From sequence record NC_031039.1: a stretch of DNA of 64,000 nucleotides; one strand, given 5' to 3'. The translations under genes and the position numbers were made by a program. Numbering within the stretch: position 1 is the first letter of the stretch; the number at the start of each line of letters is the position of its first letter. Below the pieces are notes generated by a model that saw only the letters and a program-made list of their open reading frames with translations, made no database searches and was not told the DNA's origin. Positions 11,454 to 13,702 of the stretch are shown piece by piece.

Positions 11454-11786
11454 CTATTTTATTAAAAATACAATTTCATTTTCTGATAAAACTTTTACTT
11501 CATCTACATATTTATGATTATTAATAACTTCTATGGCTTTTTCTTTATTTTTATCTGATAATAATTTAATATGACAATTTTTAAAGGTATTAATTGCGTT
11601 ATCATCAGAGAGGTTCTCGCATAGAAAACCTCTTACAATTTTATAAAATTCTATATTGCTTAGTATTTCAATAATTTTTAAAGCATTTTCTCTATATTCT
11701 AAACCTTTAAAAAAATTTTCTGATTTATACTCTTCATTATCTGTTTTAGTTAATTCACCATAGATGATATAATTTTCATTGTTCAT
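11454..11786 (-). CDS. Hypothetical protein
   Basis: 110 aa, SD GAGGG. Confidence 0.75.
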   Translation of the reverse strand: MNNENYIIYGELTKTDNEEYKSENFFKGLEYRENALKIIEILSNIEFYKIVRGFLCENLSDDNAINTFKNCHIKLLSDKNKEKAIEVINNHKYVDEVKVLSENEIVFLIK

Positions 11787-11838
11787 CTTTCCCTCTACCT
11801 TTCTTTCCCCTCATGAGAGTAAAAGAAGAACATACTTA

Positions 11839-12141
11839 CTATTTCTTATTAGTAATAGTTTTAGGTTTTTCTTTTGAATCTTGTTGAGCCTTCATTATTT
11901 TTTTAGCTTCTTTTTCAACTTGTTTTGCTTTTTCCTTCTCCAGACTGATTAGCATTGATAGATCCATATTGATCATTTCGCTGATACTTATTTTACCATC
12001 AAATAAGTCCAAAAGGTATAACTGGTATTTAGCATCCAGTTCAGTCTTTCGTTTAAGACCACCTTTTAATCCTCCTGAAGAAGACGATGAAAAAGCATTT
12101 CTTCCATATCGATCTCGATATCTCCTAACTGTTCTCCGCAA
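11839..12141 (-). CDS. gp51-like / tail assembly chaperone T-like segment, probably reached by -1 frameshift
   Basis: ISISEMINM motif resembles T4-like gp51 SxTExENM; track start is TTG with no SD; overlaps the upstream ORF by 76 nt. Confidence 0.6.
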   Translation of the reverse strand: MRRTVRRYRDRYGRNAFSSSSSGGLKGGLKRKTELDAKYQLYLLDLFDGKISISEMINMDLSMLISLEKEKAKQVEKEAKKIMKAQQDSKEKPKTITNKK

Positions 12142-13262
12142 TTACTACATTTATGAGTTTTAATTTTATAATCAATAGCATATTTTTCTGAACGATCAGA
12201 AATTGCTTGTGCTAATGCTTTAACATCTTCCACTTCTAAATTCTTAATAATTTGGAAGATTGACTCTTTATCATCAATTTTTACATATTTTACTTTATTA
12301 TTAGCTTTAAGTTGTTGAATGTCGATTACATAAAGATTCTTAATAAACATCATTGTTGTTAAGATTTGCTCATTTTCTTGTAGCATCTCTGGATTTACTG
12401 AGCCGATCAATTCTAAATGATCATACAATGAAGGTGTTTGAACATCCAACAAAATCTTATCATGTGGTAATACAATACGGTTAAATTTATTAACAAGTGA
12501 TTTTTCTAGCAACTCATCTACATTACTAACATTCCCAATAATCTCATGTAACTTAGCAAAAGTTTCTTCATCTTTTACGTCAACTAGTGTTTCATTATTA
12601 ACGATAACAGTATTTGTTCCTTGGCAATGACCACAACTAATTTCAAAAGTACTATCAGTTGGATAAGTTTGACAATAAATGCCATAGAGTAAGGTATTAA
12701 AATCATAGAATGAAGTAATTCTTAACCAATCTTTATAACTAATTTTTCCTAAAGATGTTGCATTAATTTTACTATATACAATCTTGTAAAGCTTTTGTCT
12801 AGAAGCAGATGGAGACATAGTAGAATTTACAATAGAATTAATATCAGCCATTCTAATTGATTCCATATGTGCGATATACGCCGATTGGTTAGCAACAACT
12901 TGGAAAGTAGGTTTTCCATTTAGAATAAAATCAATATCAGATGTACTTTCTAATGGACTCTTTTCAGAAAATTCAATATTTGATACATCAATAGTAATAC
13001 CACTAAGGATATCTCTTATATCCGAATTATCTGATGTTTTCTTTTTATTACTTTTCTTTTTGGTTTGTGTTGATGTTTTCTTTTTTGAAACAGCTTTCTT
13101 TTTAGGTTTTTCTTCTACAATTTCTTCTTCAATATTTTCTTCCTCATCTTCAATAATACCTAATTCTTCATGTAGATCTTCAATTTCTTCTTCACTTTTT
13201 AAACCAAAATCTTTAATCTCTTTTTCAGAAAGTTTTTTCATAACTTCTTGTCTTTTACTCAT
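12066..13262 (-). CDS. Baseplate hub assembly / tail chaperone protein (T4 gp26-like)
   Basis: Two CxxC pairs (CGHC, CSNC) with C-terminal position typical of gp26; next to a gp25-like gene. Confidence 0.6.
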   Translation of the reverse strand: MSKRQEVMKKLSEKEIKDFGLKSEEEIEDLHEELGIIEDEEENIEEEIVEEKPKKKAVSKKKTSTQTKKKSNKKKTSDNSDIRDILSGITIDVSNIEFSEKSPLESTSDIDFILNGKPTFQVVANQSAYIAHMESIRMADINSIVNSTMSPSASRQKLYKIVYSKINATSLGKISYKDWLRITSFYDFNTLLYGIYCQTYPTDSTFEISCGHCQGTNTVIVNNETLVDVKDEETFAKLHEIIGNVSNVDELLEKSLVNKFNRIVLPHDKILLDVQTPSLYDHLELIGSVNPEMLQENEQILTTMMFIKNLYVIDIQQLKANNKVKYVKIDDKESIFQIIKNLEVEDVKALAQAISDRSEKYAIDYKIKTHKCSNCGEQLGDIEIDMEEMLFHRLLQED

Positions 13263-13276
13263 TATTTTGTCCTCCG

Positions 13277-13702
13277 TTATAAAATAATTTTAGATATAAC
13301 TTTTTTATTACTTTGCCTACCAAATATAATAGTAATTTGATCAGGATCATTAGTAGTCTGAATATCTCTTGAAACAATAAAGGTAAAAACAAGTATTTTA
13401 GATCCTCTATCATTATCTACTGTATCCAAATCAAATTGTATTCCTATATTGGTTGGTATAAATTTACTTATTTGATTATCAACTTTTTCTTTTAATTCTT
13501 GTTTTAATTGATCATCAATAAATTCAAATTGATAATTTTCGATACCTACGCCTAATTCTGGTTGATTAGGATATGTACCTTGTTCAATTATCATTAAATT
13601 TTGAATAGTCTGTGCTAATGCTTCTAAATCTTTCCTCTCAGCATTAGTGTTATATATACTCTTTTCCAAAAGGAGTTCACTCTTAAATATATCATCAGCC
13701 AC
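13277..13702 (-). CDS. Baseplate wedge protein, T4 gp25 / GPW family
   Basis: LAQTIQNLMIIEQGTYPNQPELGVGI matches the gp25 signature. Confidence 0.8.
   Translation of the reverse strand: MADDIFKSELLLEKSIYNTNAERKDLEALAQTIQNLMIIEQGTYPNQPELGVGIENYQFEFIDDQLKQELKEKVDNQISKFIPTNIGIQFDLDTVDNDRGSKILVFTFIVSRDIQTTNDPDQITIIFGRQSNKKVISKIIL

Follow-up and report, generated by a model that had tools for sequence, protein, structure and literature searches.

In phage T7, ribosomes translating gene 10A/10B shift into the -1 frame at the sequence G GUU UUC. Phages lambda and P2 likewise make their tail assembly chaperones (gpG/gpGT and gpE/gpE+E', respectively) by way of a -1 frameshift, which is conserved (Xu, Hendrix & Duda 2004, as cited in PMC9024508). 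Phage T4, in turn, encodes gp26 and gp51, which are baseplate hub assembly chaperones (PMC3004832, Table 2). Both T4 proteins belong to the Pfam family PF12322 (T4_baseplate), gp26 with a length of 208 amino acids (aa) and gp51 with 249 aa and an extra C-terminal domain, PF28602 (Gp51_C). Here we compare with these systems the genes g231 and g230 of Bacillus phage AR9, a jumbo phage that has a genome of 251 kb and belongs to the PBS1 group. They lie in a stretch of 64,000 nucleotides (nt) from sequence record NC_031039.1, hereafter the window, which is 100% identical to the AR9 genome (KU878088) and spans record positions 187043-251042. Comparative sequence evidence makes it highly probable (roughly 0.85) that g231 and g230 constitute one gene recoded by programmed -1 ribosomal frameshifting, which would give proteins of 398 and 474 aa.

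In several respects the arrangement resembles that of lambda and P2. In a tail-assembly gene, a -1 slip located a few codons short of the stop would add a small domain through a linker, thereby generating a short and a long isoform; the downstream frame is devoid of its own start; the layout persists even where the sequence is not conserved; and the product is apparently not found in virions. Moreover, the best matches of the AR9 core among solved structures, though weak, are tail assembly chaperones. Unlike the lambda and P2 proteins of about 100-150 aa, however, the upstream protein of AR9 has 398 aa and paired CxxC motifs, its gene is located between a gp25-like wedge gene and the GroEL side instead of between tube and tape-measure genes, and the slip site in most lineages of the AR9 type is U_UUY and not a full heptamer. 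An earlier note on this DNA, made from the sequence alone, had described the locus as a G/GT-type pair; the architecture, with two isoforms inferred from sequence, bears this out, whereas the genomic position does not.

The comparison with T4 is of a different kind. The predicted fold of the g231 protein matches models of hub assembly proteins, g231 adjoins a gp25 homologue as T4 gene 26 does, and the short gp26 and long gp51 of T4 parallel the short and long isoforms proposed for AR9. T4, in contrast, employs two separate paralogous genes without frameshifting, while AR9 possesses a single gene of the g231 family, whose product falls below the threshold of PF12322. As for T7 10A/10B, the features that AR9 would share are a short U-run with a Phe codon at its end, an upstream tRNA that re-pairs poorly, and, for a protein of the structural module, a minor isoform with a C-terminal extension; the T7 protein is, however, a capsid protein and not an assembly chaperone, and T7 belongs to another phage group.

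In the AR9 record, g231 and g230 are listed as two hypothetical genes on the minus strand (Table 1), and no database record annotates a frameshift at g231/g230. The large open reading frame (ORF), ORF1, which corresponds to g231, ends with the codons ATG CTT TTT CAT CGT CTT CTT CAG GAG GAT TAA. In the -1 frame, no stop intervenes between a solitary TTG at 12141, a codon not preceded by a Shine-Dalgarno sequence, and the TAG at 11841-11839. If tRNA-Phe slipped by -1, the ribosome would read TCA (12090-12088) as the first of 83 codons (SSSSSGGLKGGLKRK...), and the predicted fusion has a length of 391 + 83 = 474 aa. On these points the earlier note proved reliable: its 398-aa ORF, its slippery CTTTTTC and its 3'-end codons are exact to the base, the TTG that it called an orphan indeed has no Shine-Dalgarno sequence, and the arithmetic of its ~474-aa product is confirmed. 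Its central claim, namely a -1 slip on the T-run that fuses the two ORFs, was upheld in every comparative test run, that is, openness of the frame, lack of a start, synonymous change and codon choice.

The annotated phages used for comparison were BpSp, the Staphylococcus phages S6, Machias and SA1, and Yersinia phage phiR1-37. Further loci came from the IMG/VR contigs L007 and L009, from metagenomic contigs found by protein search and from two contigs reached through the small-ORF family; a scan of viral contigs with a single protein gave no match, and an alignment-based scan gave two new loci only. In total, 18 lineages were available, 16 of them analysed by script and two (L023 and L024) read by eye. 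The layout recurs in all 18, in Bacillus and Staphylococcus jumbo phages, in Yersinia phiR1-37 and in metagenomic phages, with ORF1 homologues of 365-510 aa whose identity to AR9 ORF1 goes down to 25-28% in phiR1-37. At every locus the zero-frame stop lies 5-10 codons past an invariant Phe codon; from the slip site onwards, 72-98 codons of the -1 frame are open, and the domain encoded in them is conserved, with LLDLF-(D/E/G)-G-(K/R)-x-S as its motif. The order of the genes is also kept at all loci: a gp25-like gene, the large ORF, the small frame, in some cases a small gene, and GroEL.

The slip site itself has a common core in the 18 lineages, U_UUU or U_UUC (U_UUY), placed on the invariant Phe codon, which is TTT or TTC. 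The codon immediately 5' of it always ends in T. Specifically, within the scripted set it is CTT in all 15 cases in which it encodes Leu and ACT in the one case in which it encodes Thr, and L023 and L024 likewise carry a T-ending codon at this position. CTT is the sole Leu codon with a T in third position, and its background share among the Leu codons of ORF1-type genes is 23%. The use of CTT in 15 of 15 cases, together with ACT where Leu became Thr, therefore points to selection on the nucleotide run and not on the protein alone. The length of the run ranges from U4C (Machias, L023) through U5 (AR9, S6, phiR1-37 and others) to U6-U8 (L007, L010, L011, L012, BpSp, L024). A canonical heptamer, U_UUU_UUN in the zero frame, is found in BpSp, L010, L011, L012 and L024; L007 has six U, but their phasing, U_UUU_UCU, is non-canonical. 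The earlier note had proposed to look for conservation of CTTTTTC and of the overlap in related phages: the overlap and the U_UUY core are present throughout, while the U-run as such is variable.

The content of the -1 frame is a second line of evidence. Within the body of ORF1, stops make up 6-24% of the -1 codons over 16 lineages (18% in AR9). Between the slip site and the conserved domain, 23-35 codons are stop-free in 16 of 16, and an open -1 stretch in all of them far exceeds chance expectation. In 11 of the 16, moreover, no ATG, GTG or TTG occurs in the -1 frame between the upstream stop and the conserved linker, and in S6, SA1, L007, L009, L011 and phiR1-37 no more than 3-6 codons separate the slip site from the nearest upstream -1 stop. 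Where a start codon is missing and a stop lies so close upstream, ribosomes can therefore enter the -1 frame only from ORF1. A conserved independent start in the homologues, which the earlier note had named as an observation contrary to its proposal, was not found, the start column being variable. Finally, the eight codons just past the ORF1 stop encode G-x-L-K-R-K-x-Q in the -1 frame, and in seven lineages synonymous differences in these codons amount to 54% in the -1 frame versus 9% and 3% in the other frames. The synonymous-only change in the -1 frame therefore indicates that the stretch past the ORF1 stop is translated in that frame, even though nothing can initiate upstream of it.

Closely related phages provide a view at shorter distance. 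The extension is identical in sequence in AR9, PBS1, Goe21 and Internexus, phages whose ORF1 is 95.5-100% identical. Among the same four, the interval 11849-12209 of the window contains 2 variable sites in 360 nt, as compared with about 4.7% for the remainder of ORF1; variation in the flanking ORF1 body and in GroEL amounts to about 3-10%. A variant assembled from a metatranscriptome (X4) has 0 variable sites in 11849-12209 versus 30 elsewhere in the gene. Such near-invariance fits overlapping constraints.

A mechanism can be proposed in which most ribosomes would end at the TAA of g231 and release the 398-aa protein, while some would slip one base back with tRNA-Phe on UUU (12092-12090, preceded by a U), read TCA and go on for 83 codons. 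In lineages with six to eight U, this would occur by canonical tandem slippage on U_UUU_UUN; at the shorter U_UUU site of AR9, slippage of a single tRNA appears likely. The 474-aa isoform would consist of the same folded core, a flexible linker of ~20 residues rich in Ser/Gly and Lys-Arg, and a small three-helix domain. A set proportion of the two isoforms may be required, as is the case with lambda gpG/gpGT, and, judging from the structural models described below, the g231 proteins probably act in baseplate-hub or tail assembly.

The RNA downstream of the slip site might take part in the process. In AR9, the 90 nt past the U-run have a minimum free energy of -22.5 kcal/mol, a stability that no 90-nt window within the body of ORF1 attains, and a z of -2.0 with respect to dinucleotide shuffles. 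When the folding of this region is ranked against the ORF1 body of the same lineage, the median percentile over 16 lineages is 0.03 and the region surpasses all control windows in stability in six, being also more G+C-rich in most low-G+C lineages. Pairing of positions +3..+26 with +40..+115 beats shuffles in several lineages, with a mean z of -1.5 and values below -3 in Machias, L010 and L012. On the strength of these predictions, a stimulatory RNA structure is a likely candidate of lineage-specific character; the one predicted for AR9 is given in Table 1.

Some observations weigh against programmed frameshifting. AR9 and most lineages have no canonical X_XXY_YYZ heptamer, the AR9 site not being one because the P-site CUU cannot re-pair on GCU. 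RNAalifold gave no consensus structure alignable across lineages, and no conserved upstream Shine-Dalgarno-like element was seen when the junction sequences were inspected. The RNA evidence consists of assembled contigs, in which minority slipped transcripts could go unseen. In addition, L007, L013 and L017 carry an ATG 16 codons past the slip site, and L023 has an ATG 3 nt past the ORF1 stop; in these lineages independent initiation may add to frameshifting.

Such ATG codons would be expected if g230 were a separate small protein, made either by termination-reinitiation or from its own start, be it CTG 12039 or a different non-canonical codon, with an overlap that is open only incidentally. 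This explanation agrees with the 66-aa coding sequence that begins at the CTG in the AR9 record, with the ATG that three relatives have in the column of that CTG and with the ~100 clusters of free-standing small ORFs produced by gene callers, but we regard it as improbable. In the relatives, the column of the AR9 CTG (12039-12037) is occupied by M, L, I, F, K, D, E or S, and because of this variation CTG 12039 is not a conserved start; nor is there a Shine-Dalgarno sequence at working distance from the starts of this column, whereas the neighbouring genes have strong ones. The sole strong Shine-Dalgarno-like run near g230, AGGAGG at 12076-12071, lies 31 nt 5' of the CTG, a distance too great for it to serve that codon. 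Starts recorded for the small ORF (CTG, ATG or TTG) differ among AR9, PBS1, Goe21, Internexus, BpSp, S6, Machias, SA1 and phiR1-37 and often fall inside the conserved motif, and in three metagenomic contigs the small gene was left uncalled. When the profile of the extension was compared with 1.84 billion representative proteins, it retrieved 104 clusters (50% identity), nearly all of them ORFs of 41-136 aa whose called starts are spread over profile positions 5-26. There is no clean in-frame fusion among these clusters; several of the longer calls extend 5' across the overlap and include the U-run in translation, as in ...TFYS.... Coding conservation and synonymous-only change in the -1 frame extend 5' of every candidate start, as far as the ORF1 stop, and 11 of 16 lineages offer no canonical start at all. 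A separate start of g230 would also leave the invariant U_UUY and the choice of CTT unexplained.

Two sequences of the extension family with the appearance of in-frame fusions were rejected as support for the frameshift. The first, P0002, owes its fusion to a 1-nt T insertion 17 nt 5' of the U-run. It derives from a 1.9-kb draft contig (L025, QANM01000070, a PBS1-like sequence in a B. subtilis draft assembly) in which the upstream ORF1 is disrupted; the insertion, at about position 1680 of the contig and aligned to window position 12112, may reflect an error in sequencing and not a natural mutant with constitutive fusion. In the second, P0072, the neighbouring genes of the contig are also fragmented by indels. 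As for the AGGAGG run of AR9, a GTG found 8 nt after it, at a spacing ideal for initiation, opens a third-frame ORF of 24 codons (window 12062-11988, minus strand). Purine runs of this kind are not kept in the relatives, and in AR9 the run doubles as an arm of the predicted hairpin.

Somewhat less probable again is transcriptional slippage, by which the phage RNA polymerase would add one U in the U-run and the edited mRNA would be translated normally. One extra U yields exactly the -1 frame, AR9 is annotated with unusual multisubunit RNA polymerases, and the run reaches 6-8 T in some lineages. Slippage of this type is known on runs of about 8-9 or more, and the run of AR9 is only 5 T long, those of Machias and L023 only 4 T and then C; it is therefore unlikely, because runs of four or five are too short. 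Furthermore, RNA-seq contigs of AR9-infected cells (X1, X2), and those of a PBS1-like phage present in a metatranscriptome of food fermentation (X4), cover the U-run with word depths of 71, 38 and 25, one of them unbroken over 11700-12822. No indel is present across the run, and bulk RNA therefore matches the DNA, though minority forms could be hidden in contigs. Least credible of all is a chance or decaying overlap with an unexpressed small frame, which runs counter to the retention of the extension domain across 104 clusters from Bacillus to Yersinia phages, to its identity in AR9, PBS1, Goe21 and Internexus while ORF1 stands at 95.5-100%, and to the purifying selection visible in the -1 frame.

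The RNA contigs also provided observations of their own. Contigs X3-X6, over window positions 11809-13400, represent a PBS1/AR9-like phage diverged by ~2% in food-fermentation metatranscriptomes of 2024, which suggests active Bacillus infection in that setting. Contigs X1 and X2 end in loose runs of 17-20 T (plus strand) at window positions 12793 and 12501, corresponding to poly(A) on the minus-strand transcript; these ends inside g231 are either library-preparation tails or polyadenylated decay intermediates.

If g231 and g230 are joined by programmed frameshifting, both isoforms would share the g231 core. The protein has a disordered acidic/basic N-terminus (residues ~37-115) and a folded core (~116-385) with two invariant Cys pairs, C210/C213 and C372/C375, in CxxC motifs resembling those of Zn-ribbons. 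It matches phrog_18873 (E 8e-212), a family without assigned function. In Pfam no match was obtained for AR9 g231, PF12322 included; sub-threshold matches to PF12322 appear in 8 of 22 homologues, with a best E of 0.0038. An AlphaFold (AF2) model built on 22 homologues has a mean predicted local distance difference test score (pLDDT) of 74, with most of the core above 80. In a Foldseek comparison with BFVD, of predicted structure against predicted structure, this model matched models named after the T4-type hub family ('baseplate hub assembly protein, T4-like', 'baseplate hub subunit', 'baseplate hub assembly chaperone') with E of 3.7e-9 to 2e-5, probability 1.0 and target-normalised template modelling (TM) scores of 0.5-0.68. 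Profile comparison of ORF1 with T4 gp26, T4 gp51 and a 93-member gp51 family gave only short alignments of low probability. The link with gp26/gp51 therefore rests on the predicted fold, since the PF12322 and profile-profile scores are weak. By these models, the g231 protein would resemble the T4 gp26/gp51 baseplate-hub assembly chaperones as a distant structural relative, and the gp26-like label of the earlier note is supported as far as the predicted fold goes. The BFVD matches also include uncharacterised proteins of 500-690 aa with the same predicted core fold in phiKZ-like and other jumbo phages, namely those of Ralstonia (RSF1, RP12), Erwinia (phiEaH2, Special G), Aeromonas (PS1) and Klebsiella (Eowyn).

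Solved structures give a weaker signal in the direction of the gpG-type chaperones. A family-profile sequence search of solved structures returned only noise, and Foldseek against the PDB found nothing at E <0.1, with the HK97 tail assembly chaperone at probability 0.23. In a VIA search of 48,000 solved structures with both models, the top match was YqbN (3klu; Z 4.3 and 5.2), which we take to be a tail assembly chaperone of the XkdN type, and the HK97 tail assembly chaperone 2ob9 scored Z 3.2 and 3.6. Because these fold Z values are below 6, homology to gpG-type chaperones is not established. With regard to the mature particle, gp286 and gp285 are absent from the virion proteome of BpSp (23 proteins), in which the adjacent gp287 is present, and in the phiR1-37 record g239 and g240 are flagged as structural and g241 and g242 are not. 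This apparent absence from virions fits an assembly factor.

The extension begins with a flexible Ser/Gly-rich linker containing the LKRK motif, continues with a three-helix domain around LLDLFDGKISISEMI and ends in a basic tail. In a model of the fused variant P0002, the core is mostly of high confidence, the ~20-residue linker (Ser/Gly and LKRK) is disordered with pLDDT of ~31-34, and the three short helices reach ~72-91. Pfam scans of the extension returned chance coiled-coil matches only. The likeness of the small ORF to the C-terminus of T4 gp51, put forward in the earlier note, is no more than hinted at. Comparison by hhalign gave E 0.65 for the extension against T4 gp51 and, with family profiles, a weak pairing (E 0.075) of the ISISEMI stretch (G-K-x-S-x-x-x-I) with gp51 residues 222-232. 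An hmmsearch of the extension against the gp51 C-terminus was no better than the reversed-sequence control, and a language-model search of the protein atlas placed nearest, among named clusters, one that partly carries Gp51_C (0.89) and P2 GpE (0.88), both below the reliable level of the tool. The likeness to lambda gpT proposed alongside it found no result in its favour.

The coordinates of the locus are collected in Table 1. In the phages from AR9 to those of Staphylococcus, a gene of ~105-120 aa (g229 and its homologues) separates GroEL from the frameshift pair, while in phiR1-37 GroEL directly follows the small ORF; genes of the g229 type may belong to the same assembly module as the frameshift pair.

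Table 1. Features of the g231/g230 locus, in coordinates of the 64,000-nt window
Feature	Position	Strand	Description
g232		minus	Base plate wedge subunit, gp25-like (record annotation)
g231 (ORF1)	13262..12066	minus	398 aa, hypothetical in the record; phrog_18873
Slip site C UUU UUC (CTTTTTC)	12095-12089	minus	Leu390 = CTT 12095-12093; Phe391 = TTT 12092-12090
Dual-coding overlap	12066..12090	minus	Zero frame: last T of Phe391, H-R-L-L-Q-E-D-stop; -1 frame: S-S-S-S-S-G-G-L
Candidate stimulatory RNA structure	12010..12085	minus	7-bp hairpin 12085-12069 (AGGAGG = 3' arm), branched helix to ~12010
Predicted -1 extension	11839..12090	minus	83 codons + TAG (11841-11839); takes in annotated g230
g230		minus	Hypothetical, 66 aa in the record; start = CTG 12039-12037
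g229	11454-11786	minus	Hypothetical, 110 aa
g228		minus	GroEL (record annotation)

In the library searched for frameshifting in AR9, PBS1, phiR1-37 and jumbo phages, and for gp26/gp51 and hub assembly, which did not include the AR9 genome paper, the site is unreported, and the papers on BpSp, the Staphylococcus jumbo phages and Goslar make no mention of it. With respect to the known G/GT recoding, the comparison of sequences suggests that what would be new is a different and larger protein family, a different genomic position and a mostly minimal U_UUY site.

A programmed -1 frameshift at g231/g230 would correct the annotation of this gene pair in all sequenced AR9/PBS1-like phages, in the Staphylococcus jumbo phages, in phiR1-37-like phages and in about 100 metagenomic clusters. 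It would also add a deeply conserved recoding site to hub assembly factors of the gp26/gp51 kind, proteins that have lacked a clear mechanism since the days of classical T4 genetics, and the natural series from U4C to U8 represents ready material for the study of minimal U-run frameshifting in Gram-positive hosts. It further suggests the idea that these chaperones need a fixed ratio of short to long forms, which would be attained through slippage here and through two genes in T4. A further and doubtful possibility, on which we would place limited weight, is that the AR9 gene is the single-gene, frameshifting counterpart of T4 gp26 (short) plus gp51 (long, with Gp51_C), and that the gp26/gp51 family is a remote branch of the gpG/gpGT chaperones. 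If this were true, the near-universal chaperone frameshift of long-tailed phages would extend to the world of T4 and the jumbo phages, from which it had been believed absent, and recoding would have given way to gene duplication in T4.

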